From Octopus sinensis (Eukaryota), in assembly GCF_006345805.1 (NCBI RefSeq), contig NC_043005.1:76694001-76758000 (forward strand): a DNA stretch of 64,000 nucleotides, read 5' to 3'. Positions 12,660 through 61,964 of the stretch are shown one piece after another; within the stretch, counting starts at the first letter, position 1; each line of letters begins with the position of its first letter. The position numbers and the translations under genes are program-made. A model generated the notes under the pieces. The model worked only from the letters and a program-made list of their open reading frames with translations, did not search any database and was not told the DNA's origin.

Positions 12660-12695
<36 letters not shown>

Positions 12696-12935
12696 ATGTA
12701 TGTATATGTATGAATATATATATATACATATGTATATATGTATATATATATATATATGTATATGCATATGTGTATATATATGTATATATATATATATGTA
12801 TATGCATATGTGTATATATATGTATATATATATGTATGTATATATATGTATATATATATATATATTTGTATATATAGTAAATATGTATATGTATGTATTG
12901 AAATGGTAGTGTGTGTGTCTGTTTATGTGTGTGCG
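12655..12935. repeat. Compound (TA)/(TATG)/(TG) microsatellite
   Basis: Directly visible low-complexity tract. Confidence 0.95.
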
Positions 12936-14788
12936 CGTTAATTGAGTTCAGTGTTTTCTTAATCTGTGGGCATATTCAATGCTATTGTAGCCCTTGAATA
13001 TCATCTAACCTTTACCATCACTCATCTGTTCATTGATCCCTTATATCATTATATCCTTCTTTATGAGTTTTCTATGGTGAAAAATAATATGAATTTTTGT
13101 GACGAACACATGAAATTTCAACTTCAAGAAAAGTAGAAGACAATATGTCAATGGAAGGATTGAGTATGAAATTTTTAGATCCAAAGTACACCTTTTTTTT
13201 TCAGGGGAGTGTGTGATAATATTGACACAGCTCTGTTATGCTTCGAAAAGGTTGCAGTAAAAATCATGAAAAAGGATTTTGTATTTTGATCTCTTATGGG
13301 AAAGAAAGCCACTGAAATTTGAGATACAGTTGTGATAGAGAAATATATTCTTTGAGAATTAAAACAAATATTAATAAAAAAGTGTAATCACAATCATTTC
13401 CAACTTAATCGAGACTGCAATGAATGTGTGTGAAACAGGAAAAGCAATGTGAAAATAGTTTTGATATAAAAAATACGATTTCATGTGAATGGTTTCATGA
13501 AAGGTAAAAATGCATATGTATGCGTATATATATGTATACAGTATATGTATATATAAATTTATGTGTCAGGTCTGAATGTATTTCTATGTATGTGTATGCA
13601 TGAAGGGATAGCAGTATAATTTTCAACTACTGCTGCAAAACATTTAACGAACAAAACAGCCTCTGGTATTTAGAGTAGTGTTTTTATATATATATATACA
13701 TGTATGTATGTATGCATGTATATGCATGTATATATATATATATATATATATAATGCATATATATATATATACATACAGGTGTTTGTGCATTTATTTGATC
13801 ATATTCTTGTGTGTGTAAGTGTGTGTGCAAATGTATGATTATTTGATGGCAGTGTGGAATGAATTAAAGCTACACAAATTAGCATGAACTAAACTTTTGG
13901 GCTTGTGAACCAATGAAAGCAATAATGGTTTAAATAATAATAATTGCAATGCGAGAACGCATATTATTTCCCCAAAGCAAACAGTTGAACGAGCTATATA
14001 GAAAATAAGACATGATAATGTTTTACTGAACTGATGCAAAATGTTACATATAGTGTGGGGAGACCCCGTAACTAATCTTTTTAAATTAAGCAATAGTTTC
14101 ATTTTAGCATCACTTTAAACGTAGCGAGTTAAACTATAACATCTTCTGGAATGGAAAATGATGAGCCTATACTGAAGACCTGAAATGATATGCCTAATGG
14201 ATACATGAACCTATATTACGAAGTTAAGTGACAGTATTCAAATTGCTCTAACATTTCTGTTTAAATATAAATGCTAGTATAAACCCATACTAACGAATAC
14301 TGAAAGTGAAAACGGCTCACGAACCGGAGCTAATTGTCGAGACTGTTTCTCATTGTGATGAATGTGAATATAAATTAAATCGGAATATGAATACGAACAT
14401 TAGAGTTATTTGAATTTAGTCACCATTTTCGAAAACATGTGCTTATGTTCCTTTAGGCCTACATTCCTCATACCTTTTAGATCGTGGTACCCTTACGTGG
14501 GCCTCATATTTGACCATTTATTAGGCTTCAGATTTGGCCAATCATTGTCCACTCAAGTCAAAATCATCTAAGTTCTTGCTTTTAATGTGATACCAAAAAG
14601 TAAACTTTTGCATGAGTTTGCATGGGCACATTTTGGAAGGCAAGAAATAACGAAATAAAAACATATAGGGCGATACTCACAAGGTGGGGAACAATTAATT
14701 GTATTTAAAGATATATGGAGTTGTATTGTGATTAATAGACATACAGTGAAAATGCAGAAAATTGTTAGAATAAAGAAAGTAAATTATG

Positions 14789-15216: not shown

Positions 15217-17996
15217 AGTGCTAAATATCAAAATGGTAAACTGCCCTGAAGCGTTGACTTTTAGAGCAATAAATATTAGTAATTAAATGCAAACAAAATA
15301 GTGAAAATGTTGAGCAAATAAGTTAACAAAATGATTGAATTGGCATATATACATATATATATACATATATATATATATACACATCCAGTGTTCCAAGATG
15401 ACTTCTTAACGAAGCTATGGGAAATAATCAAATCAAAATATCAAATATATTTGGACAAATAAATGGATTGAAAAATATGAAAATAATCAACCAGTCAGAA
15501 GTAATTTTAAAGGAAAGGAAAAATTTCTCTGAAGTAAGTAAAACGAAAAAAAATCCACAAAACACAGAGTAAATGAATTCAAGCTTGCTACAAAATTAGG
15601 AACGTAAAATGATAACGAATTTCAGAGAAAACAACACTAATCAACAAAGTACACAACATATGAAGCATTGCACGTGCGCAACATTGTTTTAAATTAATAT
15701 TAATTCAAGAGATATTTTAATAACTATATATGCCTACCGTTTCTAATATTATATGATATTTAATTTAATGTTCTTTTATTAGAATGAATTTATACATATA
15801 CAGAAGTAAAATTTTATGAATAATTAGAACACGTGTGTATTTCAGAGATTTTAATTCTTGCTTCTATAATCATCATTTTTTATGTCGATACGTCAATATA
15901 TTTCATAAGTTGAGATATTTCCTTAAATTTAGCAACGAGATATAAGGAATGAATGATATCTTCAAGTACTTAGATTCTCTAAATTGTGTGGTCCATTCAG
16001 TAGGCGTTCAGTTTGAGTTTAAATAAATTTGCATCTACAGGGAAAACACGGGAAATAGTGTGGAGTGTTGTGGTTAGGTATAATATATGGTAGAGATGAT
16101 AAAATCTTTTTATCAAGAGGCCGGTAACAATAAGTTGTTTGCTAACTTAAAATAGCTGAGTCTGTATTAGGTTGTGGTAAATGACGATATAGACATTGCG
16201 ATTTGTGGGTAATTATTTATGAAATTGACGTAGAGTATTTGAGTATGTCCTTGCAGCAATGTAACAGATATTGCACAGTGCTTTATTCTGGATCACAATT
16301 GTTTTGTTTTGTTTTTTAAAGAGTAAAGGATTGGTTCTGAAATATTTTCTAATCTTGGTGTATAAACTAAATTTAGGGACGAAAATTTTGCTATGTTAAT
16401 ATGTTAAGTCCATAATTGGAGGTTATCATAAATCGCGGCCCATAGCACTTCCAGCAACTGTAGACGATTTGCCTGTGTGTGTTTTGGTTGATAAAATCTT
16501 TGTATTGTTATATTAGTAGATTAAGATACCATGTTTCGATAAAATGCTATTTTCCGAGTCTAAATTTACAGAAAATATGTACGAATGGCTAAGTTCGCTT
16601 AACAAAGAGACTAAGATTAAAATGAAATGAAATTGGTAACATTTGCATCAAATTATGTGTGGTTATCAGCAAGTAATATAGAGACACAAGAATGTCGAAG
16701 GAGTAGCTGAATATACAGAATATCCATATATAGTACATGTGATATATAATATATACTATATATTATATAATATCTAATATATACAGTATTAATATAATAA
16801 TAAGGTGTCTACTTCGAAAATTCTTTCGTTAGAATCGAAACATAGAACTACATACGCAGATATCAAGAATGTCTACTGCTAGCCTCAAATCATAGCTTTG
16901 CTGATGTCAAGGTCTCAAGTTAGAGAAAACACTGGTCTATAATATTAGTGTAGGAGAGCACATCTCAGACTCATAAGTGTTCTATTGAAAATATATTGAT
17001 AATTGCTGAGAAACAGGATAATTATGACAATGTAAAAGGTAGTTTTCCCGTAAATTTCGAGGTATAGTCTATGAAGTATATTCAGAGTGGTTACCCCTCA
17101 TAATCATGCAATATCTTGTTGCATGAAAAAACAGTATTTCGCTGTATTTATACTTTTATATTTATACTTTTTTATGTAACAATTTGAGAATCCTGAGAGT
17201 TTGCTTCCTTAACATAGAAAAGGTAACTTTCAATATAACTTTTCCAATGTGCTTGAAACAGATAACATCGAACCATCTTCAGGCTTTAGGAACGGAGACA
17301 TGCGTCTTTCCGAAACATTCTCTGCATAAAACGCTGGATTGTATTAATCAGTAAGAGGTGCAATCGTTATCAGAGATCGTTGCAATACATAATATGAAAT
17401 GCCTTTAAAATAAAGGTAATATATGAATGCATCAATCTGAAGATATTCATATCACTCCTGCGCCTCTGTTTACACTATGTAAAGAAGCTATCAACATATT
17501 CATTTCATAATTCAGAGGCTTGTATATTTTCACCAAATGTTCCCGAGAAAATATTGAGTAATGTGTTTTATGTAAATCTTAATAAGGAAATACATTTAAG
17601 CCAGATATACTAAAGTTGCTACTGATACACATTTATGTATTTGAGTGTTGTGCTGGAATTATAACTGACATTGAAATATTTTAAAATGTCTTATGAAAAA
17701 TATGACTGTTCGAATTATACATATTACAATCAAATAGTAGGAATGCCAAAGTATATTTCTGATAGTTTTTACAGAGAGATTGCTTTTATGATTTTTGCAT
17801 AATATTTTAGATTTATATCTACAAGACTTGAGGCAGCAATAGCATCGATTATACCCATGTTTCTCAATGCTCACAGAATTAATTTTGAGTGTTATTTAGA
17901 ATACAATTAATATTGAAACAACACTAAGTATGCTTTCAATGGCCTATTTCATTCTTGTATTGTCCTTGTAAGGAGTGTCCACGGTACAAAAACTGC

Positions 17997-30025: not shown

Positions 30026-30099
30026 CTATTCCTTGGTCGAGCTGACTTTTTTTTCTTCACTCATTGTCCGACGTTCTTGAGTGGTCGTAGAAGTTACGC
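30026..30099 (-). CDS. NF60: Neurofilament gene, NF60-type short terminal exon ((G)VTSTTTQERRTMSEEKKVSSTKE*)
   Basis: Acceptor acatatttcag, 74 nt, phase 1 in frame with exon 30956-31068, TAG stop. The Thr-rich QERR.MSEEK end resembles squid NF60 as I recall it. Confidence 0.82.
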
Positions 30100-30804
30100 C
30101 TGAAATATGTAATTTTTGGCCTGTCAGAAGGGAGGAGTAGGAAACATATCGCAGAAGGAAATATAGTACTAACGAAGAAGGATATAAGGATCACAGAACG
30201 GACAGATAAGTGCGTGCAAGAATTTAGTCCAATTGCAGCATCATGCAAGGTAAATCTAATTTCATGTAAATTACTAAACAAGTGTTTTGGTATTTCTTTT
30301 TCCATTTGAGATAAGCAAATTCTACAGAAGATAGCTTTGTTTGTGCAGAAATTAATAATTGAGTAAAGGAAAATAGCACACACACAAGAAAAGAAAATTA
30401 CTAAATTGTAAAGTACCGTTTTGAAGAATGGTACGCTTATTACCAGATTTATAGTATGGAAAATAGAAAAACTGGTTAGATTGTGGCGAGAGAAAGGAGT
30501 TGTTAGAAAGAAGACAAAGATGTTTTGTAGAAAGCACTTTGTTAACATGTCTGTATCTGCAAGCTACAATATATATCTGCACTATGTGTTAGCTATAAAC
30601 TGAGTGATTTGAATCGTTGGAACAACTTAATTTGGAAGGATTCTTGTGACAAGTAAACTGTACATATGAATAAGAATGTGATTATAAAAAATATAGGATT
30701 ATATACACCCCCACCATATGTGTATGCAAGCTATTGTACATTTAATAGTATAAGGTAATATACAAAGTACATATGTACATCCATATATATTACGTATAAA
30801 TGAA

Positions 30805-30955: not shown

Positions 30956-31068
30956 CACCGGTAGCCTCATAACTGCTTTCTGATGACTTGGTGAGCATGG
31001 TAGACAGCACTTCTGCCTCACTAGTTCTGGATCCGACAACTTGTTCCACTATCTGCTTCATCCCAATT
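30956..31068 (-). CDS. NF70: Neurofilament gene, tail exon shared by NF60 and NF70 types ((R)IGMKQIVEQVVGSRTSEAEVLSTMLTKSSESSYEATG)
   Basis: Acceptor ttgtttgtgccaacag and donor G/gtgcgt, 113 nt, phase 2-1. It joins the LLEGEET-R exon in frame. Not in the ORF track. Confidence 0.9.
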
Positions 31069-32319
31069 CTGTTGGCACAAACAAACAACCAAAAGAAAAA
31101 ACAAGGTAGAAAAAAATGTCTTCTTAAAAACCTACTGCATTTTTTTAAATCTTCGAGTGCGTTGTCCTTTCTTTCGTTCTCTTTCTCACCTGGTTACTAT
31201 TTCACAACGTACCATTTTCCTGTTGACTTCCATAACTTGCCTGTGATGCATTTTGGGAACAATGAGAGCAGTACCAAAGCCTGTTCTGAGTGCTTAATAC
31301 CTTAATATTATTAAAAATCAATTAAAAGCCCTCTATTATTATATTTCTCCTATTGTACAAAATGTCTTTACCTCTTTCTGTCATGTTTCTTTTGCCATCA
31401 AAGTATAATAAGAAAAATAATAAAATTACACATTGAATATATTTTTGCGAAAAACAAAACAAAATATGTAGTAGTTGGAAGACGGGAACACACAAGTTGA
31501 ATGTTTGTTAGCAAACATTGAGTTTGAGGAGAATCAACTTTTAGTTCATATACATATATATATATGAAATAAACAACATTTATCTTCCAGATTTATCTCT
31601 TAAGTATACTATTGATAATGTTAAAATATATAATAAAAGGGCTACTTTCGAATTAAGTTACATAATTATATTACTAATATATGAACAGAATGCAAAATTT
31701 TATTATATTTAATAATTAAAAATATTGCTATTACTACCGTTTTCTTCATTTGGCAAGGTTAACATGCATCTAGTATGTTTAATATTTTTTAATACTGATT
31801 ATGTATCAAAATTACTGTTGTGGTATTCTTAAACTTACATCATACAGTACAAAGCATTGTTGTATAAAAAATAATTAAAATTTAACGTTATATCTCGAAT
31901 CACGTTAATAAATTCGTTTGAATATGAAAATATATATAATTTTTTTTTTTTTTATCATTGAGCAACTCATTCTCTGATTTTGAATCTATCGGCTTCCAAT
32001 GTTTAATACAGTAGCATACGTCATTCAGACTTCTTAAATTGATTTCTTGATAATATTAGAAGATACTAAAAGTGAAAATCTGAAAGGAATAGACAGAGGC
32101 TTTCAATTAAATTTCCTGGTCAGTAGATAGACATGAAGAAACCTGGAGAATTTATATGAACAAAAACTTCCAGGATATAATACTTTATTTTGAATACTAC
32201 ATAATACTACATATTTTGCGGTAATTTTATTTTGAGAAAATTTAGGATTCATTGTTCCTTGATAAACATTTATTTCCGCAAAATCTATTGAAGCTGAAAT
32301 ATTTTCACAGACCCATTGT

Positions 32320-32345
32320 AATTATATATATGTATATATATATAT

Positions 32346-32409
<64 letters not shown>

Positions 32410-32410
32410 G

Positions 32411-32454
<44 letters not shown>

Positions 32455-32638
32455 TATTAATATATATGTATATATATTATTTATTTATATCTATATATAC
32501 ATATATATAAATATATAGTAATATACATGCATACACAATCACATATACACATATAATATAGATACATATATATATGAGTACATGTTTAATCACACATAAA
32601 CACACATACACAAATATTCATACAGGTACATATATGCG

Positions 32639-32692
<54 letters not shown>

Positions 32693-32770
32693 ACATAAAA
32701 TATATACATAGATGCATATATCCATATATATATATACGTATATATGTATGTATATATATATATTCATTTA
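32320..32770. repeat. Compound (TA)n/(CA)n microsatellite field
   Basis: Directly visible. Confidence 0.95.
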
Positions 32771-34507
32771 TATATTTGTGCTCTATTGTTCCACTTATAT
32801 GTACGTAAGTGATGTATGATTCTTTGATTTTTTATACGTTGATGTATATGCAGATGCTAAAAATGTACAGGTGTATTTATGAACTAATGGATATATAAAG
32901 ATGCCTTGAGATGCGTAAATATTTATATGAAAATTATTATGTCTGTGTAACTTTGATTTATTCTCTCCCTAGTATAATCTATTATAAGCTAATCACCCTA
33001 ATTTATCTGACATAGGGCCTAAAAAAACCATATTTTGGAGTTAGCTGTAATAATAGAATGTAAAATAATACAAACGGAAATATATAAAATGCTAAAATGT
33101 TATTGAAATAAAGGAATGTAAAATTTCGTAAGATATAGAGATATACACTGCTTAATTTAGCAAGTATGTGAGGTTACTATCCTTTCATTCTATCATAAGA
33201 CTACATAAATACAATTTCAAGAGAAAATATTTGTTCATTTCTTTGTAATGAAACGTGTAATAAAAAATTATTTTCAATATATACCATCCATTATAATATA
33301 AGAATAGCATAACTGAATGAGACTATCCTAAAATATTGATATATAATACAGGCGGAAGCGTTCATATTTTTTCTGTGTGGGTGGTGGGAGGATAGTCAGT
33401 TTAGTCGATCCAGTACTTACTCGACTTGTATTTATATCATCAACTCAGAAAATGTAAAATATTATATATATATAACGTTTACGAAGTCGAACTCGACTAA
33501 ACTCTTGATGTAAAATGTTATAAGCAAATGAATGGTAACTTAGTCTAACATTGTCTGTAATAAAATTAATAGAAGATTTTTGCAGTGAGGGTATTTTTTT
33601 TTACACTGGAGAGATGGAATTTGACCCCAGCGGAAGTTCTACACAAATCTATTGTCCCGAATTAAATACTGTTAAACATTATAATCACTTAGCTGTTTCC
33701 GACATCACTACGTTTGTCGTATATGATTGCAATGAATTTCATAAATGATACGTTTTAACTCCTACGACACTGATGGCTCTCATTTTGTGATGGTCACACT
33801 TTCCCTATTTCCAGGTCATACTACTTGATTTATTGAGTTCGATCTATCTTTATTATTAGTTTTAAATATAAGACGCTTTGGAATAATTTCGGGACTGTGA
33901 TTTTCCAAAAGAAATATAAACTAAGATAGGAAGTAAAAACTGTCCCAGGACTTTAGCTTAATATATCTTAGAAAGATAGAATATACACTGGATATCAAAT
34001 TAATTTTTATATTTACTTTTCAAACACTTTTCAAAAGTTGCCAATAAATCTAAACTAAGATTAACCCCATCATTGTCAATAACATTTCAGATATAACAGC
34101 ATTTTTCTTTTCTAATTTTGGATAATATTATATAATTGTACTTCTCTAATGTAACGAGAAGTACAGTTCTGAAACAAGTATCCCTTTTTCCTACACTCTA
34201 GTTCAACATCTTGTGATATTTTCATTGTGACTGTTGAATACTATACTTATTTTCTTTTTATTCTACTCATTGTGAAATCAAACTCTACATTTGGGGAGAG
34301 CTGATTTGTATAATAAGCACATTATATAACCATTTTGTGCTTCGCAGTCATGAAAGAGACTATGGCCACATTAAATATTATATTACCATAAATGAGGCTT
34401 GGGTTGATTAAGATAAAGCTTCTTGGATGTGGTGGCATTCATACCTTCTCAGTGTTGTATAATCAGACGATCTCTACCATGAGCTTACCAATTAAAGTAC
34501 GACACTC

Positions 34508-36340: not shown

Positions 36341-39300
36341 TTAGACATGCAAACCAAAATCTGTGTTATCTTTTTTATTAAAAACATCGAAAGCAGGATA
36401 CATGTCCAACAGTTTCAACGTACCACCCACCCCATTTGAACTCGCATCGGGGAAATTCTCCGATGGCCTTTTCATCTCTGCTCTCCTGATTTCAGCGGTT
36501 TCAGCAGTTTTCATCGACTCAGCCATACCATCCGTGCCACTTCTAAATTGCTTAGATGTAGTTTTGAGCTGTATTGTAATTTCCTTTTGGGGATCTTTAA
36601 TCATTCTCACCGCCTCACTTTCAGCTTTGTATACTCGCTTTTCTCCTCCCCAATCATAACCATTCTGTTGACTCTCAGCATATGAATTATCAGCCTCATC
36701 TGTAGCCGAGGTTTCGCTGAATGTCTTATAAACTATTTCGCTTACGCTATCATCGCTCTGCTTTATAAAATAGCTTTCTGGAGCAGACGATTTGAGCAAA
36801 GTATAATTTTCCGTTACTGTATCTTTCGTTGATTTCGATTCAGATACAGAATACATGTGTTCAGTTTCAAAGCCCGTTTTTAACTGATCAATTCCTGGGG
36901 TCGAAGAAGATGTCAACTTATAGGGAAACATTTGTGATGTAGATGTTTCTGGTTGGCCATTTTCTTTTTGTACCCACGATGGAAAACTAGCTACTACAGA
37001 ACTACTGGGAAGTAAACCTTTATCATGGACTACTGTTCTGGTTTGTAAAAAAGTGTCAGTATCCTTGAAAGTTTCTAAATCTGAAGAATGAAAAGAACGC
37101 TGTAACAAAGGGGACTTAACTGTCTCAGAATAGACATGAGACAGCAAAGGTTCACCAGTTTCTAATGGTACTGTGCAACTTGCGGTCTCTAAAACTAACA
37201 CTGAAGTAGAATGTTCAGTCTCGTGCTTTTCAGGTATAATAATGGATGAAGCTTTCATAGAATCATTCAATTTCGAGACTTCAGTAGACTCAGATCGTAA
37301 CTGGTATTTATTGTATTGAGAATTATCATATGTACTACCCTGATTCGATTCAATCTTAAAGGTGATACGATCTGAAGCATTGCCAGTTGTTACAGTGGGT
37401 TGGGAAATTATATTATCACTTGAGGTTTTTAGTTCAGTCTTATTCGTTGAGTTAAAAGATGGAATATATTCAGTGGACGCGGAGGGTGAATGTCTTAAGA
37501 TGTTGGCTTTATCAGATGAATCAGCAGGCCTAGTTGATATTGAAACTACAGATGAACTAGTTGTTACGTATTGTGATTGACTAGACGTGACTGGAAACAC
37601 TTTCTTCCCTGAAGTAGAAAACGAGGTAACTTTCAAGGATTCAGTGTTACTATAAGACCTAGGGGAGGCATCTTTGTCAGATATTAGTGACGTATAGTGT
37701 TTATCATGAGATAACTTTTCATGAAGTGATGAAGTTGCAGTTTTACTGTATTCCTCATCTTCTACAGAAGATTTGAGAGAATTGGCAGAAGCTGGTGATT
37801 GATATTTAATTTGATCTCCTGCCTCAACAGACGAACGACTTTCAGATAAAGTAGAAGTACATCTCCCAGATGCAGGTAAGCTTACACTTGTAGACTTTCC
37901 CTGCTTTAAATCTACTAGAGATTCAGACAAATATACAGGAGATAAAGCTGGTTGGGATGGAGAAGAATACCTTACTGAAAGTACAGGAGATTTTGCAGAA
38001 TTAATGGGTGACTTTACCTTTTGCGAATTTTCCAAAATGTTTGGGGAGATAACTGGTTCAGATTTTACAAAGGACTTGTCCTTCAGATAGTCTGCATCCT
38101 CAGATTGAATAGGTGATGTTGCTTTCTTAGATGACTGTTTTTTATCCGATATAACTTTTTCAGGGCTAGAAGGTGATTTAGCAGGTTTGGTTATCACAGT
38201 GGATTTAGCTTTTTCTGAGGGAGAAGTGGGTAACACTGAGTCAGAGGGTGCAGTTGGTACAGACTTGGTTTTCTCATATATCACAGAGGACTTTAAAGAT
38301 TCAGAAGTAATTGAAGATTTGTGTTTTTCAGAGGCCACAGGTGAAAGAGATCGATCCGATTTATCGGTTATACATTGTCCAGACAATACAGGAGACAAAT
38401 GTTCTGAGTCAGATTTAACAGGGGAGTGGGGAGACGTAGCTATCACAGATGATTTAAGGGTTTCAGATTCTGACTTTTCAGAAGGTTCAGGCGAAAGCCT
38501 TTGTTTCGATTGCATTGACTCTGTCTCCAGTGTGTGTGAAGAGGTTTTGAGGGATTTAGAAGATTTTGAAGAGACTGAGGTTTTTGACTTCTCAGATTCT
38601 GCTTTTTCTGAGGGCACATGTGATGAAGGCGATTTTGCGGCTGGTGACTGAACTGGAGATTTTGACTTAACAGATTCTGCTTTTTCAGAGGGTACGGGGG
38701 ATTGTGGGGATTTTGCAGGTTCTGAGGTGACAGGAGATTTTGACTTTTCAGATTCTGCTTTTTCTGAGGGTACAGGGGATTTTGCAGGTTCTGATGTCAC
38801 AGGAGATTTTGACTTTTCAGATACTGCTTTTTCTGAGGGAACAGGGGATGTTGCAGGAGATTTTGACTTTTCAGATTCTGCTTTTTCTGAAGGGGCAGGA
38901 GATACAGGGGTCTTCGCAGGCTCTGACGTTACAGGTGACTTTGATTTTTCAGATTCTGCTTTTTCTGGGGGGATAGGAGACTTTGGGGATTTTGCAGGTT
39001 CTGAGGTAACGGGGGATTTTGATTTTTCTGAGGTTACAGGGGATTTTGCAGGTTCTGATGTCACAGGAGATTGTGACTTTTCAGATTCTGCTTTTTCCGA
39101 GGGAACAGGGGATTTCGCAGGCTCTGAGGTGACAGGAGATTTTGACTTTTCAGATTCTGCTTTTTCTGAGGGTACAGGGGATTTCGCAGGTTCTGATGTG
39201 ACAGGAGATTTTGACTTTTCAGATTCTGCTTTTTCTGAAGATACAGGGGATTTTGTAGGTCCTGAGGTAACAGGGGATTTCGACTTCTCAGATTCTGCTT

Positions 39301-42300
39301 TCTCTGAAGTTACAGGGGATTTTGCAGGTTCTGATGTGACAGGAGATTTTGACTTTTCAGATTCTGCCTTTTCAGAGGGTACGGGGGATTTCGCAGGTTC
39401 TGATGTCACAGGAGATCCCGACTTTTCAGATTCTGCTTTTTCTGAGGGAACAGGGGATTTCGCAGGTTCTGATGTGACAGGAGATTTTGACTTCACAGAT
39501 TCTGCTTTTTCGGAGGGTACTGGGGATTTCGCAGGTTCTGATGTCACAGGAGATTTTGACTTTTCAGATTCTGCTTTTTCTGAGGGAACAGGGGATATCG
39601 CAGGTTCTGATGTGACAGGAGATTTTGACTTCACAGATTCTGCTTTTTCGGAGGGTACAGGGGATTTCGCAGGTTCTGATGTGACAGGAGATTTTGACTT
39701 TTCAGATTCTGCTTTTTCTGAGGGAACAGGGGATTTCGCAGGTTCTGATGTGACAGGGGATTTTGATTTTTCAGATTCTGCTTTTTCTGAGAGAACAGGG
39801 GATTTCGCAGGTTCTGATGTCACAGGAGATTTTGATTTCTCGGACTCTGCTTTTTCTGAGGGTACTGGAGATTTTGCAGGTTCTGATGTGACAGGGGATT
39901 TTGACTTTTCAGATCCTGCTTTTTCTGAGGGTACAGGGGATTTTGCAGGTTCTGAGGTCACAGGAGATCCTGACTTTTCAGATTCTGCTTTTTCTGAGGG
40001 AACAGGGGACTTTGCAGGTTCTGAGGTCACAGGAGATTTTGACTTCTCAGATTCTGCTTTTTCTGAGGGTACAGGGGATTTTGCAGGTTCTGATGTCACA
40101 GGAGATCCTGACTTTTCAGATTCTGCCTTTTCTGAGGGAACAGGGGATTTTGCAGGTTCTGATGTTACAGGAGATTTTGACTTTTCAGATACTGCTTTTT
40201 CTGAGGGCACAGGGGATTTTGCAGGTTCTGATGTCACAGGAGATTTTGATTTCTCAGATTCTGCTTTTTCTGAAGTAACAGGGGATTTCGCAGGTTCTGA
40301 TGTCACAGGAGATCCCGACTTTTCAGATTCTGCTTTTTCTGAGGGAACAGGGGATTTTGCAGGTTCTGATGTCACAGGAGATTTTGACTTTTCAGATTCT
40401 GCTTTTTCTGAGGGTACAGGGGATTTCGCAGGTTCTGATGTGACAGGAGATTTTGACTTCTCAGATTCTGCTTTTTCTGAGGGTACAGGGGATTTTGCAG
40501 GTTCTGATGTCACAGGAGATTTTGATTTCACAGATTCTGCTTTTTCTGAGGGTACTGGGGATTTCGCAGGTTCTGATGTGACAGGGGATTTTGACTTTTC
40601 AGATTCTGCTTTTTCTGAGGGTACTGGGGATTTTGCAGGTTCTGATGTGACAGGTGATTTTGCCTTTTCAGATTCTGCTTTTTCTGAGGGAACAGGAGAT
40701 TTCGCAGGTTCTGATGTCACAGGAGATTTTGATTTCACAGATTCTGCTTTTTCTGAGGAAACAGGGGATTTTGCAGGTTCTGATGTGACAGGAGATTTTG
40801 ACTTTTCAGATTCTGCTTTTTCTGAGGGCACTGGGGATTTTGCAGGTTCTGATGTGACAGGAGATTTTGACTTTTCAGATTCTGCTTTTTCTGAGGGCAC
40901 TGGGGATTTTGCAGGTTCTGATGTGACAGGAGATTTTGACTTTTCAGATTCTGCTTTTTCTAAAGTTACAGGGGATTTCGCAGGTTCTGATGTCACAGGA
41001 GATTGTGACTTTTCAGATTCTGCTTTTTCTGAGGGGACAGGGGATTTTGCAGGTTCTGATGTCACAGGAGATTTTGCTTTCTCAGATTCTGCTTTTTCTG
41101 AGGGGACAGGGGATTTTGCAGGCTCTGATGTGACAGGAGATTTTGACTTTTCAGATTCTGCTTTTTCAGAAGTTACAGGGGATTTCGCAGGCTCTGATGT
41201 CACAGGAGATCCCGACTTTTCAGATTCTGCTTTTTCTGAGGGAACAGGGGATTTTGCAGGTTCTGATGTGACAGGAGATTTTGACTTTTCAGATTCTGCT
41301 TTTTCTGAGGGTACAGGGGATTTCGCAGGTTCTGATGTGACAGGAGATTTTGACTTTTCAGATTCTGCTTTTTCTAAAAGAACAGGAGATTTTGCAGGTT
41401 CTGATGTGACAGGAGATTTTGCCTTTTCAGATTCTGCTTTTTCTGAGGGTACAGGGGATTTTGCAGGCTCTGATGTCACAGGAGATTGGGACTTTTCAGA
41501 TTCTGCTTTTTCTGAGGGTACAGGGGATTTCGCAGGTTCTGATGTGACAGGTGATTTTGCCTTTTCAGATTCTGCTTTTTCTGAGGGCACAGGTGATTTT
41601 GCAGGTTCTGATGTCACAGGAGATTTTGCTTTCTCAGATTCTGCTTTTTCTGAGGGTACTGGGGATTTGCAGGCTCTGATGTGACTGGAGATTTTGACTT
41701 TTCAGATTCTGCTTTTTCTGAAGTTACAGGGGATTTCGCAGGCTCTGATGTCACAGGAGATCCCGACTTTTCAGATTCTGCTTTTTCTGAGGCAACAGGG
41801 GATTTTGCAGGTTCTGATGTCACAGGAGATTTTGACTTTTCAGATTCTGCTTTTTCTGAGGGCACAGGGGATTTCGCAGGTTCTAATGTCACAGGAGATT
41901 TTGATTTCACAGATTCTGCTTTTTCTGAGGGTACAGGGGATTTCGCAGGTTCTGATGTGACAGGGGATTTTGACTTTTCAGATTCTGCTTTTTCTGAGGG
42001 TACAGGGGATTTTGCAGGTTCTGATGTGACAGGAGATTTTGATTTCACAGATTCTGCTTTTTCTGAGGGTACAGGGGATTTCGCAGGTTCTGATGTGACA
42101 GGTGATTTTGATTTCACAGATTCTGCTTTTTCTGAGGGTACAGGGGATTTCGCAGGTTCTGATGTCACAGGAGATTTTGACTTTTCAGATTCTGCTTTTT
42201 CTGAGGGTACTGGGGTTGTTGCAGGTTCTGATGTGACAGGAGATTTTGATTTCACAGATTCTGCTTTTTCTGAGGGAACAGGGGATTTTGCAGGTTCTGA

Positions 42301-44995
42301 TGTGACAGGAGATTGGGACTTTTCAGATTCTGCTTTTTCTGAGGGAACAGGGGATTTTGCAGGTTCTGATGTCACAGGAGATTTTGACTTTTCAGATTCT
42401 GCTTTTTCTGAGGGTACTGGGGATTTCGCTGGTTCTGAGGTCATAGGTGATTTTGCCTTTTCAGATTCTGCTTTTTCTGAGGGAACAGGGGATTTCGCAG
42501 GTTCTGATGTCACAGGAGATTTTGACTTTTCAGATTCTGCTTTTTCTGAGGGTACAGGGGATTTCGCAGGTTCTGAGGTCATAGGTGATTTTGACTTTTC
42601 AGATTCTGCTTTTTCTGAGGGAACAGGGGATTTTGCAGGTTCTGATGTGACAGGTGATTTTGACTTTTCAGATTCTGCTTTTTCTGAGGGAACAGGGGAT
42701 TTCGCAGGTTCTGATGTCACAGGAGATTTTGACTTTTCAGATTCTGCTTTTTCTGAGGGCACAGGGGATTTCGCAGGTTCTGATGTGACAGGAGATTTTG
42801 ACTTTTCAGATTCTGCTTTTTCTGAGGGAACAGGGGATTTCGCAGGTTCTGATGTGACAGGAGATTTTGACTTTTCAGATTCTGCTTTTTCTGAGGGCAC
42901 AGGGGATTTCGCAGGTTCTGATGTGACAGGGGATTTTGACTTTTCAGATTCTGCTTTTTCTGAGGGTACTGGGGATTTCGCAGGTTCTGATGTCACAGGA
43001 GATTTTGATTTCTCGGACTCTGCCTTTTCTGAGGGTACTGGAGATTTTGCAGGTTCTGATGTGACAGGGGATTTTGCCTTTTCAGATTCTGCCTTTTCCG
43101 ATAGAACAGGGGATTTTGCAGGTTCTGATGTGACAGGGGATTTTGACTTTTCAGATTCTGCTTTTTCTGAGGGTACTGGGGATTTCGCAGGCTCTGATGT
43201 GACAGGTGATTTTGATTTTTCAGATTCTGCTTTTTCTGAGGGCACGGGGGACTTCGGGGACGTTTCAGGTTCTGATGTCACAGGAGATTTTGACTTTTCA
43301 GATTCCGCTTTTTCCGAGTGGACTGGGGATTTGGGTGACTTTGCAGGTTCTGATGTCACAGGAGATTTGGACTTTTCAGATTCTGCTTTTTCGGAAGGCG
43401 AAGGCGAGTGAGCTTTACTAGATTTCACTGAATCTGCTTTCTCTGATGATACAGGAGATTTTGGCGATACACTACTTTCTGTTGTTTCAGCTGTAGATTT
43501 TTCTGTTTCTACTTTTTCTGACTTTACTGTTGTTACGGTACGGACTGTGGTGACTGATAAGGATTTTTCGTATACTTCATCAGGCGATGGTGAGTGCTCT
43601 GATGGGGTAGAGGGCTTAGTGGTTAGATCTTCATCGTGTACGCTAGGTGATTTAGGTTTTTCAGATAGCACGGGTGACTTTTCGGATTTAGGTGATTCTG
43701 ATTTATGGGGAGATGTAACTGGTTCAGACTTTTCAGATTCAGATTTAACAGAAATAGTTGGGGATTTAGGTGCTTCAGATACTACGGGAGATTTAGCGGT
43801 AGGAGTGCGTGCATCATCTGCAGGGATGGGTGACTTTGCATGTTCAGATAAAATTGGGGAAGTTACCTTTTTAGATTCTGTTTTCGAAGGCGAGAGAGAT
43901 TCAGCAACAGATGCTTCAGATCCTGTAGGTGATTTACTTGACTTCAATGGTTTTTCTTTTTCTGGGGACCCGGCAGATTTTACAGATTTCTCTGATTCAG
44001 CGTTATCGCTGACCTCATCCTCTGCTGGTGAAACACATTTTTCAGATGCTGCTTTCAATGTTTCAGATTTATCAAGACCGTCAGCGACTGACTTTTCGTG
44101 TTCTGATGGTGTTGAAGCCTTTTCAGATTCGGCCCTTTCGGATTCGGCTTTTTCAGATTCAGCTGGAGTTGTTGCTTTTTCAGATTCGGCCCTTTCCGAC
44201 TCAGCTTTTTCAGACTCGGCTTTTTCCGATTCAGCTTTTTCAGACTCGGCTTTTTCCGATTCAGCTTTTTCAGACTCGGCTTTTTCCGATTCAGCTTTCT
44301 CAGACTCGGCTTTCTCCGATTCAGCTTTTTCAGACTTGGCTTTCTCCGATTCAGCTTTCTCAGACTCGGCTTTTTCCGATTCAGCTTTCTCAGACTCGGC
44401 TTTTTCCGATTCAGCTTTTTCAGACTCGGCTTTTTCCGATTCAGCTTTCTCAGACTCGGCTTTTTCCGATTCTGCCTTCTCTGATTCTGCTTGAACAGAT
44501 TCTGTTCTCTCTGATTCTGCTTTTTCTGATTCTTCACTAGTCGTTACGACTGTTTTCACAGATTTTACTGTTCGAACTGTCTCTACAGTGATGATATCCT
44601 CTTCAGCTTCCGAAGCTACGTTTTCGACGTCTTCATCAGGCGATTGAGTTTTCTCAGCTGTCACGTCTCTGTAGTCTGTTTTTAATATGAACTCTTCTTT
44701 CACTTCATCTAGACCTGTTCCGGTATCAGCATCTGAATCAGCTTTAGTTTCTTCGGCCTCAGCTTCTGTGTGTGTGTCGGAATCACTGTCTTTCCCTTCA
44801 TCATCTGCTTCTTCTCCAGTCTGGTGGTAGCTTTCTGTTAGAGAACTATGCTCCATTACGATTTTCTCTGGTGAGATCGCTTTTCTTTGCATTGCTCTTG
44901 CACTATGGCTCGTCGTTCGAACTTCTCTTTTAATCAAGTCTGGTGTGTAGGGTTCTCGGCTTCGGTAAGTCATTGGAGGCTGTACTAACTCGATC
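36341..44995 (-). CDS. NF220: Neurofilament gene, giant NF220/NF-H-type terminal exon of about 2,884 aa, with an apparent 1-bp frameshift at about 41666-41669
   Basis: Acceptor ctccctcctgcag/G completes the Arg codon from the rod exon donor at 53073, giving LLEGEETR-IELVQPPMTYRS. ORFs 41614-44973 and 36341-41617 carry the same repeat in two frames. TAA is at 36341-36343. The acidic segment DDEGKDSDSDTHTEAEAEE and the KSP repeats resemble squid NF220 as I recall it. Confidence 0.88.
38600..43411 (-). repeat. Coding minisatellite: 69-bp (23-aa) unit KSPVTSEPAKSPVPSEKAESEKS
   Basis: About 60 near-perfect units plus several irregular end units (estimated as span/69). Two KSP motifs per unit. Confidence 0.97.
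44176..44490 (-). repeat. Coding 15-bp repeat, (AESEK) x21
   Basis: 315 nt = 21 pentapeptide units, with three more units at about 44119-44163. Confidence 0.95.
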
Positions 44996-46677
44996 CTGCA
45001 GGAGGGAGATAAATAACTTTGTCCACCCAGGAAACTACCCCAAGAAGTAGATACAATAACGTAGGAGTAATTTTAAAAGATGTTTCCTATGTTTCCGTCC
45101 AGTGAATTTTTTCTAAGGAAATTTCCTGTATACCAATATATCCTTATCTCATCATTATACGTGTTATTGAAAACAGATGCCAAAAAAAAGTATTACTAGA
45201 AAAGTATGAAAATGAACCTCCATCTCCATTATTCTCGTGTATCTATACAGATAGTATGCATACAATATATGTGAAATCCGTTCTAATGTGTCGAAATGAA
45301 ACAATGTAATATAAAATATGAGTTGATATTGAAGTAACGAGTATAATGATTGTATATACTAATATATATATATATATTTATTTATATACACCAACCAACA
45401 CATCAGGGGGTCCGAAGCGTATCTATCACTCATACATATGTGTGTGTGTGTGTGTGTGATCAAATAGACCTCAATGGGTCTGATGATGTTCTGCGTCGGC
45501 CAGATTTATATTACGTAGTAAAATCGACGCATAAAGTGCAGTAAACTAGTTGTGTTTGCCACACACAGGCACACACATGTATATATATGTATACATATAT
45601 ACATATAACACTTATATGTATATATATGTATACTTATATATACACATAAACACATATGTATATATATATAGATAGATATAAATATATATATATATATAAT
45701 ATGCATGTATATGCATACATATGCATATATATATACGTGCGTATATGAGTATGCATTTATACACGTATAAACTTTTGTCGCTTTATAATAAAGAAAGCTG
45801 TATTTCAATCAGCCAGCCTATCAGTACAAATGTAGTGAATACATTGTAGATATATGCTGGACCTTCGTTGATAAAATTGCAGGTTCAGCAATCGTCCAAC
45901 GCGCAACGAGACATAAAAGCAGATCTGTCATGTCAACAACGTCGATATTCGTTTTTCGGGCTTTGGTATACCATATGGTATGTATTTTATGCGCATAATT
46001 ACGCATACAAAGCACCGATTGTAACCTGCGTATCTACATTAAAAACGTTCCTTTTATTTGAAAAAGAAACAACCGGACCGATGCCTTTAATAATCTGTTA
46101 TGGACACCATGAAAATGATGGATCAAAATACTGAAAACATAGGGCTAAAGTAGGATACACCTATTATTAATTAAAATTTTATATCAGCAACTGTTTCCCT
46201 AAGTATGTTTTAATGCCCTCCTCAAAGCACACTCACTCACAAACAGCTTCCTCATACAAGCAAGCATATCAATTTGATGTCTTAGTCTTAACGGAAATAT
46301 TTGCACTCATAATTAGATTCACAGTTGGAGATAATTTATGAATGTTTACACATTTCAATTTTATCATAAATTGATCTCTTGAATTTTAGAAAGAAATTTT
46401 ATAATAATCCCCTAGATTTCATATAATGATAACTCTGCCCATCTACTAACATAAAGAAATCCAAGGAAATCTATTCCTTTATATTTCTGCTGATGAAAAT
46501 TAGTTAAATATGAGCAATCATCTATATTAAATTGTGTTTATTTCTGTGAATTCGCATGATATGATGTGATATAAATATAAATACAATTATATACATGAAT
46601 ATATATATATATATATATATATATGCACGTTTGTATATCTATCTAACTTATATCATGCATACATACATGCACATATA

Positions 46678-46746
<69 letters not shown>

Positions 46747-46927
46747 GTGTGTATCCAATTACAATGGGACCGAAAAAGGAATGAGAGAGAGGGGAAGAGA
46801 AAGGTTGGGGAAAATAAGGGGATGAAACTATGCATTTTTAATTATCAATAATCATCATTTGCAATTAATATTTAATATCCTTCGATTTTGCTATCTGAAT
46901 TGATTATATATCTGCTTAATTTGACTT

Positions 46928-46934
46928 ATCCGCA

Positions 46935-46985
<51 letters not shown>

Positions 46986-46987
46986 AC

Positions 46988-47026
<39 letters not shown>

Positions 47027-47030
47027 TAAT
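46928..47030. repeat. (AAT)n microsatellite
   Basis: Directly visible. It is the source of the poly-Ile ORF. Confidence 0.95.
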
Positions 47031-48419
47031 AAGATTAGATACACTGGTTTCGAGAATAATGGAAGGTAAGTTCTTTTGTTATTTGAAGTTAATTAGTATA
47101 TCAGTTTACGAAAACTAGTTTAATTTAAATTTTAAAACGTTATCTGATTTGTTGATTTGTGTATATTAAGTATTTTGAGTTGGATAAAGATATATTGGTT
47201 TCAGTTTGACAAAAGGTTGAGGTGGAATCATCGAAACTGGACCAAACCAATAAACAATCATTGAATATCTCACGGACACCAATGCCAGCTGCCGGCGTCA
47301 CATATTACTATGGTTTCAAAAACAGAGACAATATCGGGATTCTATTGTGTTTGACATAATAACATCAGGAGAGTTATCTAGGGAAATTGCCGTTAAATTT
47401 GCTTTTCATAAAACGTTAGAAGTTTTAAAATAGGGTTCAGTAAAGAAGGAAAACATTAATCTTATGAAACGACGGAAGCAATCACTAAACCAAATCTAAA
47501 GAGTATTTTGTTTTTTTACATATGCACTTTAGAGCTTTCTTGTACAAAATTATCCAGAACTAAGGTTCATCGGTTCTTAAAAAACTTTTCAATTAATCTA
47601 GTTGTTTCAATACCTAAACACAGAATTTTTTGATCGGTGATACCGTACAAAAATGTTAACTTTTTAACATTCATTCTAGCAATAAGCATATTATGAGATA
47701 TCATTGGCTTAATGTTTAATGTATTTCAATTGTAGCTTTCTATAAAATACATACCAATAAAACCATAGAGAGTAACGAGAAAAGTAATCCAGAAACAATA
47801 TTTTCTATTAAATTAACCTATCTTCGTAGGAATTGATTAGCTTTCGCAGTAAATGCTTATTAATAATTTTGTCCACCTGATTACAAATTTGGAAAGTTGG
47901 AACAGTGGACTCAATCTTACTGCTATTTGTTGTATGGATGCCAGAAGAAAAAGGCAGAGTTGTTACTGAATACAACAAAACGTTGTATGTCGTTTTCTCT
48001 TTCTCTCTTTCGTTTTCAACAATCCTTATATTCTTACTATTGCTTTCCTTTTGATGAAGAAAAACTTCCTATTTAGATCTACTGTATTTTCGGCTTTCCT
48101 TTCTCCCTCTTTTATCCAACAGGTGTGGTAAAATTATTAAAATTATCTATGTGAAGGTATAATTAGTCTATAATTTCATCGAACAAAATTTCGCTATCGG
48201 ATAGATTGTTAAAATGACTTAGTTAGCAAACTAATGATATTTCAACATGCAAATACAAAAATACTATTAACGATGACAAAACACTGAAGCGAGCATTTTT
48301 CAAAGCTATATCAATGAGAAGGGTCAAGTTCATACACCTTGGATTGTGACCAACAGGTGGCGTGTTATAAATTCTAGCAATTTATTATCTGTGAATTTTA
48401 ATCCTATTAAATATGATAT

Positions 48420-48439
48420 TTGTATAAATATATATATAA

Positions 48440-48480
<41 letters not shown>

Positions 48481-48577
48481 TGTATGTATATATATATATA
48501 ATATATATGTATGTATATATATATATATATAATATATATGTATGTATATATATATATATATATAATATATATGTATG

Positions 48578-48629
<52 letters not shown>

Positions 48630-48700
48630 GTATGTATATATATATATGTGTGTATATACATATATACATACATATATTATATATATATATTTATATATAT
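48420..48700. repeat. Compound (TA)n/TATG microsatellite
   Basis: Directly visible. Confidence 0.95.
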
Positions 48701-49807
48701 AGTCGAATGTCATTAATTTACATTTCGTTTCACTCTTAAGTCCAATTCATTGTGACAAGATTAGCTCTATATAAATATGGAATAAACTATACTTTGTATC
48801 GTTTAGTTACAGAAAACAACCCACAAATTCTAATTTACCCAGCTCCTAACCCATTATCATCTCTATAGAGTTTGGTATAAACTTGAATAGAATAAGCTAA
48901 TTTTTTATAATCATCATTATGATTATTATTATAAATATATAAATATATATATAAATATATATAAATATATGCAATTGAGGAACACTGAAGCTAGTTGTCA
49001 GTTAAATGTGAATATATGAGACCATCTTCTTATTCTTATACTTTAAAATCCTGGTATGTAGCACACTATGTTTTTTATGGCAAGTTATTAGGTTTACAGA
49101 GAATTTAAAGCTGCTTTTGGTTATGCAGTTTAAATGGTAAGATAATAAATAAGATAACTAAATTAGAGTGGGATGTGAGGGTAATTTTGCATGAAAATAT
49201 AAGACTAAGACTGACATAAAAAATTGTGGTATACTTTTTACAAAAAACAAAAAACAACATAAAATATATGTGTATATCGCCTAATTAATTGTTCATCATA
49301 TTTTGGAGTTGCTTTTAGGAAGGGAACACTAAAGAGAAAAAAAAATACAAACAATGGAAGAAAGGAAAATAAGAAGTCTGAATCAAGGCTTAAAAATTAT
49401 GATTCGTATTTGCTACTCATTGAAAGCCGATAGTAATGATAACACTAATATATATTGTTATTTGTTAATAATATTAACGGATAGCTATTGAACTACTAAT
49501 AATAGCTATTGTCTTAAACATCTTATAAAGTCATGATATTAATAATAATAATGGAGCACCGATCAAAGAACTCAAAGTTTATATATATGTATACATTGCA
49601 TTTTATTATCTAGCTACAGTAAATTGCAGATTAACTATTGTCAACGTCTTACATTATTTTATTAATACTAACTATATTATTACTAACCCTAATTTTAGTT
49701 TACCAGTTATTTAAGTTCAGGCATTCTTGTTGGTCAAGAAAGAGCTAAATAATGCATATTTAATTTTCTATACAATGAAGAAAATAGAAGTATACTGCAG
49801 CGTACAT

Positions 49808-52800: not shown

Positions 52801-53072
52801 AATATATTAGTAAATTTTACCAATATTCCAATCGAAAGCAACATATCAATATTAAAACTAATAGTCTCTTTGATTTCCATCAAAGGAAATTAATCTGACA
52901 TTCGATCAACTTCGCAAAAAGATATTTATATAAATTCATAATGCTAATTCTATTATAAAACTAATCATTTGACAAACTTGAACGCATTTCTTACATGACC
53001 CATTCTTCAAAACTCTCCATAAACGAAAAAAAGCAACAATTATATTAATACAGATATTAATGGTTCCCCTAC

Positions 53073-53293
53073 CTGGTCTCTTCTCCTTCCAACAACTTCC
53101 TGTATGCAGCAATTTCTAATTCAAGTGATAGTTTGATATCCATCAAATCTTGCAGTTCTTTCAAAATGCTTTCCATTTCTCCACGTAATTTGGTAATTTC
53201 TTCTTTGTATTGAGAACTTTCCAATTCGTTTTGCCTATCTTTTTCTTCTAATTCTCGCATCAAGTCTTGATTTGTTCTTTCCATTTGAGCATT
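53073..53293 (-). CDS. NF70: Neurofilament gene, coil 2B end exon (NAQMERTNQDLMRELEEKDRQNELESSQYKEEITKLRGEMESILKELQDLMDIKLSLELEIAAYRKLLEGEET-R)
   Basis: Acceptor ttttgcttgcag and donor AG/gtaggg, 221 nt, phase 0-2. It contains the IF signature LELEIAAYRKLLEGEE. Shared by all three isoforms. Confidence 0.97.
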
Positions 53294-56120: not shown

Positions 56121-56377
56121 AGTATAACGTTTGTGTCTGCTCGCTGCCATCGTCAATATATAAATAATGATGTCAATAAATCATTAACGAGATGGATTAA
56201 TTCCATTGCTAATAATATTGCTATTGATGTCAAGCTGTGCTTTTCATCATTCTGGGTTCAGTTAAATATTCGAGACGATTTAATCGACTGACATCCCAAC
56301 GACCCAGATATCAAGATTGTGTCGGTATTAGGAGAAATTATTAGTATCATTATTTTTTTCATTATTATTTAGAAATA

Positions 56378-56492
56378 CCAAGGCAGTGAGTCGACAGAAT
56401 CGTTTGCACGTCGGACCAAGTGTTCAGCGATATTTATTCCGGCTCTTTACATGCTGAGGTCAACTTTGCTTTTCATCCTTTCGGGGGGGGGC
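56378..56492 (+). mobile_element. Decayed SINE head and core (family of 53494-53908), plus strand
   Basis: GGCAGTGAGTCGACAGAATCGTTTGCACG...GCTGAGGTCAACTTTGCTTTTCATCCTTTCGGGG. Confidence 0.7.
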
Positions 56493-58203: not shown

Positions 58204-58329
58204 CCTTGCTTCTAAGTCAGTAAGTCTGTTACGAACTTCGTTCATATTGCTTTTCAGTTTTACATTTTCTTCTTTGTTGCGAGTAACTTCCATATTTTGT
58301 TTGGTAGCACCGGTACGGAATTCTTGAAC
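58204..58329 (-). CDS. NF70: Neurofilament gene, rod coil 2 exon (VQEFRTGATKQNMEVTRNKEENVKLKSNMNEVRNRLTDLEAR)
   Basis: ttttaacag acceptor and gtatgg donor, 126 nt, phase 0-0. Heptad coiled-coil pattern, in frame with both neighbouring exons. Confidence 0.95.
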
Positions 58330-59209: not shown

Positions 59210-59371
59210 TTTGAGATTGTAATATGCTTCCATATCTCCACGCATTTGATCACATTTGGCATCATATTCTTGTTGAATGTCACGAATAGCTTGAGAGAGT
59301 TCGTTCCTCCAGAATTCACGGTTTTCAGCGGTTGTATCTCGGTATGCGAGAGCTGCCAATTCTTTAAGCTC
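59210..59371 (-). CDS. NF70: Neurofilament gene, linker L12/coil 2 exon (ELKELAALAYRDTTAENREFWRNELSQAIRDIQQEYDAKCDQMRGDMEAYYNLK)
   Basis: tttttacag acceptor and gtaaga donor, 162 nt, phase 0-0. The EL.QAIRDI..EYD motif is typical of lamin-like IF rods. Confidence 0.96.
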
Positions 59372-61868: not shown

Positions 61869-61964
61869 CTGTGCATGCAAGTCTTTCTGGAATTCAAGCT
61901 CTTCTTCAAGTGTTTGTCTTCTATTTTCAGCGTCTAAGTGGTTGATGGTTTCGTTATTCAAATC
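61869..61964 (-). CDS. NF70: Neurofilament gene, end of coil 1B exon (DLNNETINHLDAENRRQTLEEELEFQKDLHAQ); 5'-most exon in the window
   Basis: gtcattacag acceptor and gtatgt donor, 96 nt, phase 0-0. It has the LEEELEF coil 1B motif. Not in the ORF track. Confidence 0.95.

Follow-up and report, generated by a model that had tools for sequence, protein, structure and literature searches.

Introduction

Cephalopods owe fast conduction to unmyelinated axons of very large diameter, and neurofilaments are classically prepared from the squid giant axon. The squid neurofilament proteins NF60, NF70 and NF220 are products of one gene, generated by alternative splicing, and a phosphoprotein of >400 kDa in squid axoplasm is usually treated as an aggregate. 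By the title of Way et al. 1992 (PNAS 89:6963), a squid neurofilament is said to carry a lamin-like rod together with a tail of Lys-Ser-Pro (KSP) motifs. Here we analyze a 64,000-nucleotide stretch of octopus DNA (contig NC_043005.1, positions 76,694,001 to 76,758,000; hereafter the window) and describe a candidate giant exon on its minus strand, at 44995-36341, that would supply such a KSP tail to the octopus counterpart of the squid gene.

Tandem KSP units also occur outside this family. Drosophila Futsch/MAP1B, a cytoskeletal protein of neurons and likewise a giant, contains tens of tandem neurofilament-like KSP units and belongs to an animal lineage without type IV neurofilaments, but it is microtubule-associated, has no rod domain and is not an intermediate filament (IF) subunit. 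Among vertebrates, human NfH contains 42 KSP motifs (PMC9826399), and the NF-H tail is ~660 aa long (PMC2132801). Squid axoplasm contains heavily phosphorylated neurofilament species at ~200-220 kDa and at >400 kDa (PMC2110134; PMC3680447). A search of the literature on NF220, NF60/NF70 and Doryteuthis, which lay outside the text of Way et al. 1992, found no description of a giant exon.

A candidate giant tail exon of the octopus neurofilament gene

We consider it highly probable that positions 44995-36341 form an alternative 3'-terminal coding exon of the octopus neuronal IF gene, the orthologue of squid NF60/NF70/NF220, and that in the functional gene this exon encodes one continuous tail. 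It opens at an acceptor ending ...ctccctcctgcag, with the G at 44995 as its first base and as the third base of an Arg codon, and closes with a TAA stop at 36343-36341 (minus strand). Once a single missing base is restored, the conceptual exon product is 2,885 aa long, and joining it to residues 1-441 of O. vulgaris P0001 gives a full protein of 3,326 aa and 356 kDa before phosphorylation. These conceptual values agree with a first-pass annotation made from the sequence alone, which had estimated a sidearm of ~2,900 aa in a protein of >3,300 aa. The exon and its parts are as follows.

36341..44995, minus strand: candidate giant alternative 3'-terminal coding exon (NF220/NF-H-like tail), 8,655 nt, with acceptor and N-terminus kept in cuttlefish locus L001
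44486..44994, minus strand: acidic non-repetitive N-terminal tail segment, exon residues ~1-169, containing DADDEGKDSDSDTHTEAEAEETKADSDADTGTGLDEVKEE, which is nearly the same in cuttlefish
44117..44487, minus strand: 15-bp tandem array coding for (AESEK)x21 and three further copies, from Tandem Repeats Finder (TRF) and a regular-expression count
43213..44116, minus strand: KSP/SP-rich segment of irregular sequence that separates the AESEK run from the regular array, from the translation
39004..43212, minus strand: 61 regular tandem units, each of 69 bp / 23 aa and with two KSP, consensus KSPVTSEPAKSPVPSEKAESEKS
41666..41669, minus strand: site of the single missing base, GCA/GCG AAA to GC-AAA, which shifts the frame inside a repeat unit
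36344..38580, minus strand: Ser/Thr-rich non-repetitive C-terminal region of ~745 aa, lineage-specific save for ~70 aa near its end

The composition of the tail proved close to what the first-pass annotation had described. Its acidic segment is followed by an A(E/K)SE(K/R) run of exactly 21 units at exon residues 170-274, the (AESEK)x21 noted there, with three more copies nearby. The 60-70 copies described for a 23-aa unit with two KSP each correspond to 61 units in strict register plus a few degenerate ones reaching ~38580, or 63.1 copies by TRF (period 69 bp, 39023-43392). The conceptual tail holds 137 KSP motifs, where on the order of 130 had been estimated, and 188 [ST]P sites, and the non-repetitive end put at ~750 aa measures ~745 aa. 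No Pfam domain was found in the giant exon.

The open frames of the giant exon are far beyond chance: across all six frames of the window, with the exon and its antisense frames excluded, the longest stop-free stretch is 168 codons. GC content is 0.43 within the exon versus ~0.30 in the window, and AATAAA signals lie downstream of its stop, the first at 315 nt. Coding on the plus strand was considered and rejected, as the plus-strand frames (1,010, 585 and 360 codons) are confined to the repeat-bearing part, 38652-44491, where long antisense frames arise because the periodic units are stop-free in the reverse frames. Minus-strand frames alone continue through unique sequence at both exon ends, to the acceptor and to the stop. 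The antisense open frames at 38652-44491 (plus strand) could mislead gene predictors. Rfam and tRNA scans of the window were empty.

Predicted junction with the lamin-like rod

We mapped the exons of the host gene in the window by tblastn with the annotated O. vulgaris isoforms and a decapodiform NF70-like protein, and then checked their borders. At the protein level, the window's rod exons and the tail exons downstream of them match the annotated O. vulgaris neurofilament isoforms with 100% identity. Canonical AG/GT borders flank every rod exon in the window, past whose end the head and the first rod exons are located.

61869..61964, minus strand: rod exon (end of coil 1B), by O. vulgaris protein mapping
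59210..59371, minus strand: rod exon (coil 2), by the same mapping
58204..58329, minus strand: rod exon (coil 2), by the same mapping
53073..53293, minus strand: last rod exon (...LELEIAAYRKLLEGEETR), common to all isoforms, with donor AG/GTAGGG after 53073, phase 2
30956..31068, minus strand: shared NF60/NF70-type tail exon (IGMKQIVEQVV...), which competes for the 53073 donor
30026..30099, minus strand: terminal coding exon of the 503-aa NF60-type isoform (...SSTKE*)
~11211-11039, 10112-10005, 9837-9718 and 8450-8412, minus strand: four lamin-tail-domain exons of the 610-aa NF70-type isoform

The giant exon is preceded by the last rod exon and followed by the NF60/NF70-type tail exons. The 53073 donor leaves two bases of a codon and the 44995 acceptor (polypyrimidine tract, cag/G) adds the third, giving a predicted junction ...EGEETR/IELVQPP in frame, and the same donor could be joined in phase either to the giant exon or to the short NF60/NF70-type tail exons, which lie 14 kb beyond. 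Canonical, in-phase splice sites at 53073 and 44995 thus support the earlier proposal that an NF-H-like KSP sidearm forms an alternative last exon of a lamin-like protostome IF.

The rod matches PF00038 (E=4e-54; residues 90-442, 353 aa, over 312 profile positions), aligns contiguously to lamin A (6jlb) and matches vimentin in two stretches, an alignment pattern that indicates a coil 1B of lamin length. The tail of the 610-aa isoform matches lamin Ig-fold chains in the PDB at E=1e-10 to 1e-13, with a Pfam LTD score of 26.7 bits, under the 34.3-bit cut-off. The gene therefore shows both marks of a lamin-like protostome cytoplasmic IF, namely the lamin-length coil 1B and a lamin tail (Ig fold) in at least one isoform. 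The two shorter isoforms annotated in O. vulgaris have the look of by-products: a TAG met on read-through of the 53073 donor terminates the 442-aa form (53066-53152, minus strand), and in the 455-aa form the rod is joined straight to the 30099 exon, skipping 31068-30956 and changing the frame (30060-30101, minus strand).

Comparison with cuttlefish and gastropod genes

The gene layout of the window recurs at locus L001 of the cuttlefish Acanthosepion pharaonis, where one uninterrupted open frame of 2,623 codons (65310-73178) lies between the last rod exon (56159-56380) and the shared tail exon (77427-77543). In this frame 2,600 codons follow the acceptor TATTTATCTCCCTCCTGCAG/GATCGAG, which is identical to the octopus acceptor sequence. 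The cuttlefish exon contains 125 KSP motifs, an array with a period of 72 bp and 51 copies (50 in strict register), and only three AESER copies. The first-pass annotation had presented the tail as greatly expanded, and as a special octopus expansion this does not stand: a cuttlefish orthologue of 2,600 aa with 125 KSP is the kind of finding that the annotation itself had said would count against it. On these genomic sequences the giant size is common to an octopus and a cuttlefish, not octopus-specific.

The N-termini of the octopus and L001 tails share 58% identity over 111 aa (E=1e-33), and within them a ~40-residue acidic block, DADDEGKDSDSDTHTEAEAEET(K/R)ADSDADTGTGL(D/E)EVKEE, differs at two positions between octopus (44710-44830, minus strand) and L001 (~65560-65690). 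Conservation of this block far exceeds that of the sequence around it, and this suggests a module for specific binding or for casein-kinase-type phosphorylation rather than mere acidity. In the C-terminal region, ~70 aa near the end align weakly between octopus and cuttlefish (33% identity, E=2e-4 pairwise), and the remainder is octopus-specific.

Among the repeat units, the cuttlefish consensus KSPVASEPAKSPVPSEKAESEKSA is identical at 22/23 octopus positions, with 13/23 codons differing synonymously. Mean unit identity is 0.90 within octopus and 0.85 within cuttlefish, and between the species it is 0.73, with a maximum of 0.81; every cuttlefish unit carries an extra Ala, making it 24 aa long against 23 aa in octopus. 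Because units are more alike within than between species and the extra Ala occurs in all cuttlefish units, the two arrays have been homogenized separately, yet the peptide, the copy number and the total length have been nearly kept.

In the gastropods Haliotis rufescens (L003) and Lottia gigantea (L004), the distance from the last rod exon to the next tail exon is only 2.0 kb and 3.4 kb, respectively, and neither gene contains a KSP-bearing open frame of at least 200 codons or a match to the giant exon N-terminus. On this sampling, the giant exon is present in an octopus and a cuttlefish and absent from the two gastropods. The Argonauta hians locus (L002), which covers lamin-tail exons only, has no KSP frame. 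The cuttlefish gene models P0125 and P0126 (L001 10001-16070) place ~150 low-complexity residues upstream of the true head exon (16074-16622); the sequence does not match squid NF60/NF70 and is likely a mis-predicted 5' extension.

These comparisons also bear on whether the open frame lies outside the neurofilament gene altogether, either as a gene of its own nested there or as an intronic repeat that is not expressed. Such an origin would fit two observations, namely that the rod is connected to the giant exon in no annotated isoform and that no database protein covers the exon. Against it, the acceptor and the rod donor agree in phase, and both acceptor and polypyrimidine tract are conserved between octopus and cuttlefish, as are the position and orientation of the frame in the same intron. 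The frame begins just upstream of the acceptor, its first in-frame ATG is 22 nt inside the exon, and its sequence carries the mark of strong purifying selection. There is also a squid precedent for rod and KSP tail in one cDNA (Way et al. 1992, title). We regard a separate origin as very unlikely.

Coding signal and integrity of the array

Among the 61 regular units, variability at codon positions 1, 2 and 3 is 0.025, 0.019 and 0.143, so third positions vary six- to seven-fold more than the others, and the codons departing from the consensus comprise 178 synonymous and 54 nonsynonymous changes. This pattern indicates that the array is protein-coding and under purifying selection.

Mis-assembly classically affects tandem arrays, and the array might in principle be an assembly over-expansion of a much shorter repeat, as the first-pass annotation had itself allowed. 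The units themselves speak otherwise: 58/61 are distinct in DNA, their mean pairwise identity is ~0.90 whatever the distance between them, and the longest exact internal repeat is 129 bp, so that multi-kilobase reads would place each unit uniquely. The independent assembly of the cuttlefish, moreover, has 50-51 regular units. Because nearly every unit is unique and exact repeats are this short, the sequence argues that the array length is not a product of over-expansion, an explanation we find hardly credible. Comparison of array length with the cuttlefish, the one other cephalopod examined, found a matched size and lent over-expansion no support.

A one-base break in the assembled frame

The first-pass annotation had described a single 8.65-kb coding exon. 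Its extent on the minus strand, 44995-36341, stands, but the exon as assembled is not one open frame, a one-nucleotide deletion having been overlooked. The assembled sequence comprises two open stretches in different frames, 45072-41617 (1,152 codons) and 41701-36344 (1,786 codons). The missing base falls between 41669 and 41668, in an Ala codon, and restoring one base joins both frames; read literally, translation would meet a stop at 41616-41614 after 1,126 exon-coded residues.

Coding constraint is much the same on either side of the break. Synonymous and nonsynonymous departures stand at 60:16 upstream and 112:37 downstream of the missing base, and the unique AT-rich sequence of 2.2 kb that follows the array is still stop-free. 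The equal synonymous excess and the persistence of the open frame imply that both halves were translated in one frame until very recently. Because the coding signal holds on both sides and the cuttlefish orthologue is uninterrupted, the most probable cause of the break is an error left behind by long-read homopolymers or by polishing; at most, it is a recent allele.

If the frameshift were instead real in the germline, the sidearm would be truncated to 1,126 exon-coded residues with 54 KSP motifs, in a protein of ~1,567 aa, and the 1,786 codons downstream would persist as a remnant that had only recently lost its translation. The deletion is, after all, present in the sequence as given, and the truncated product would come nearer to the apparent size of squid NF220. 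We nevertheless judge a germline frameshift unlikely. Downstream units show the same synonymous excess as upstream ones, the unique sequence beyond them has stayed open, and the cuttlefish frame is intact. Furthermore, loss of a single base at a GCA-AAA/GCG-AAA junction within a tandem array strikes the kind of site at which Oxford Nanopore (ONT) R9.4.1 base calling and short-read polishing perform worst (PMC10700109). ONT R9.4.1 reads, with short-read polishing in Hypo, underlie the O. vulgaris reference (PMC10700109), and if the window derives from that assembly, loss of one base within a 4.4-kb array whose units are 90% identical is the sort of residual error to be expected. Two biological repairs of the break were also considered and rejected: programmed frameshifting has no supporting signal, and neither does RNA editing, whose A-to-I form cannot insert a base.

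Relation to known neurofilament proteins

Searches of protein collections recovered the rod but no protein covering either non-repetitive end of the tail. The C-terminal 766 aa had no homologue, and no match to itself, in a word-indexed search of 5.8 billion proteins or an exhaustive HMMER search of 1.84 billion representatives, and the N-terminal 594 aa returned only low-complexity AESEK-like matches, such as O. sinensis NHE-RF. A query of the rod plus the exon start found 1,774 IF proteins, and among the best 120 of these 1,774 the matches end at or near the rod end. Neither this query nor the N-terminal one brought up an NF220 entry among the matches listed.

The nearest described system is that of squid (Doryteuthis pealeii), where, as in octopus, one gene provides a common head and a lamin-like rod, and alternative 3' exons add a short, a lamin-tail-domain or a long KSP-repeat tail. 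At identities of at least 90%, squid NF60 and NF70 fall into clusters with the products of the cuttlefish gene, and those products map to the layout found in the octopus window. The octopus gene has what defines an NF220-type isoform: head and rod exons common to short-tail and lamin-tail-domain isoforms, and a predicted KSP-repeat tail downstream of the rod with splice sites in phase. The sizes differ, in that squid NF220 is named for an apparent 220 kDa, whereas the octopus and cuttlefish proteins, predicted from genomic exons before phosphorylation, reach 356 and ~320 kDa, the latter being the mass of the tail with head and rod added. The first-pass picture of a tail grafted onto a lamin-like IF thus holds as architecture, but this arrangement has reportedly been published already for squid NF60/NF70/NF220.

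The resemblance to vertebrate NF-H and NF-M is of another kind. Like these proteins, the octopus product would project a long low-complexity tail from an IF rod, with a Glu-rich segment followed by tandem KSP units on which proline-directed phosphorylation is to be expected by analogy. The octopus tail has 137 KSP motifs in 2,885 aa, against 42 in human NF-H and a tail of ~660 aa, and only six of its SP sites have a basic residue at +2 (SPxK/R). Vertebrate NF-H/NF-M have a type IV rod with a short coil 1B and dedicated NEFH/NEFM-type genes, whereas the octopus rod is lamin-length and its tail an alternative exon of the only neuronal IF gene. No vertebrate neurofilament protein occurs among the matches for either non-repetitive tail end, which fits the convergence with NF-H that the first-pass annotation had proposed.

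Other molluscs have genes annotated as "60/70 kDa neurofilament protein-like" (Haliotis, Lottia, bivalves), whose rods are orthologous, with 62-76% identity among the molluscs listed (75% for Haliotis rufescens, 68% for Lottia). They share the exon layout and the alternative LTD and non-LTD tails of the octopus gene; unlike octopus, those of Haliotis rufescens and Lottia gigantea have no giant KSP exon.

Other features of the window

The introns abound in long microsatellites, both TA-rich and of TATG/TACA type, and include a poly(ATT)-like tract (11250-11880, 12600-12975, 32250-32830, 46570-47115 and 48330-48750); such tracts give rise to the majority of the remaining "ORFs" of the window. 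An inverted repeat located downstream of the neurofilament gene (59-188 / 439-568; 130 nt, 95% complementary, arms 250 nt apart) may represent paired short interspersed elements or a foldback element.

Discussion

We read the giant exon as the octopus version of the squid NF220-type isoform, a kind already known. What is new is that the exon is very large, that its size is matched in the cuttlefish, that it is unannotated, and that a one-base break runs through it in the assembly. Several points weigh against our reading of it as a functional tail. The frame is interrupted as assembled, none of the four annotated O. vulgaris isoforms (442, 455, 503 and 610 aa) uses the exon, and no protein in the searched collections covers either non-repetitive tail end. 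We infer the splice from 53073 to 44995 from sequence, not from RNA, and the origin of the window in the ONT-based O. vulgaris assembly from protein identity. Direct homology to squid NF220 is assumed from position and motif type, tail similarity having been shown to the cuttlefish genomic exon only. As to function, mouse genetics are reported to show the NF-H tail to be dispensable for caliber and radial growth (PMC2132801), and the equation of a KSP tail with caliber is an analogy, not a rule.

With these points in mind, we propose how the protein may work, drawing the steps of phosphorylation and brush formation by analogy with squid NF220 and vertebrate NF-M/NF-H. Splicing to the giant exon would yield a protein of head, lamin-like rod and 2,885-residue tail, and the Ser/Pro/Lys/Glu-rich composition of the tail, together with its lack of Pfam domains, suggests that it is intrinsically disordered. 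Each 23-aa unit contains four Lys and four Glu and would stay charge-neutral as long as it is unphosphorylated; in the axon, phosphates would be added to the two KSP serines and probably also to the SEK serines, of which the tail holds 160. By general kinase consensus, most of the SP sites suit MAPK-type proline-directed kinases rather than Cdk5, because only six have the form SPx(K/R), and the SEK serines suit acidophilic casein kinases. Once phosphorylated, the tail would become strongly anionic and extended, forming a swollen brush around the 10-nm filament core that may set inter-filament spacing and help to fill and stabilize large unmyelinated axons.

Taken together, these observations allow a broader and tentative proposal, which we put forward as a possibility and hold to be less probable than not. 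The coleoid high-molecular-weight neurofilament subunit would be the ~3,000-3,300-residue product (320-356 kDa unphosphorylated) of the unannotated exon, this product would be identical with the >400 kDa phosphoprotein of squid axoplasm, NF220 would derive from it as a shorter form or by processing, and tail length would be under stabilizing selection. The last element is suggested by the arrays themselves, because they were homogenized separately and yet both keep 50-61 regular units, 125-137 KSP motifs and a unit identical at 22/23 positions.

Our findings show where a reference genome lacks an annotation and probably has a base wrong, and point to a heavy-subunit tail four to five times longer than that of vertebrate NF-H and missing from current annotations. 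They offer a concrete sequence against which the older biochemistry of the 220 kDa and >400 kDa phosphoproteins may be reread, and they provide polymer-brush models of neurofilament spacing with an extreme case from nature. For the evolution of the family, the octopus tail would stand as a clean example of the convergent evolution of KSP sidearms, here on a lamin-like filament.

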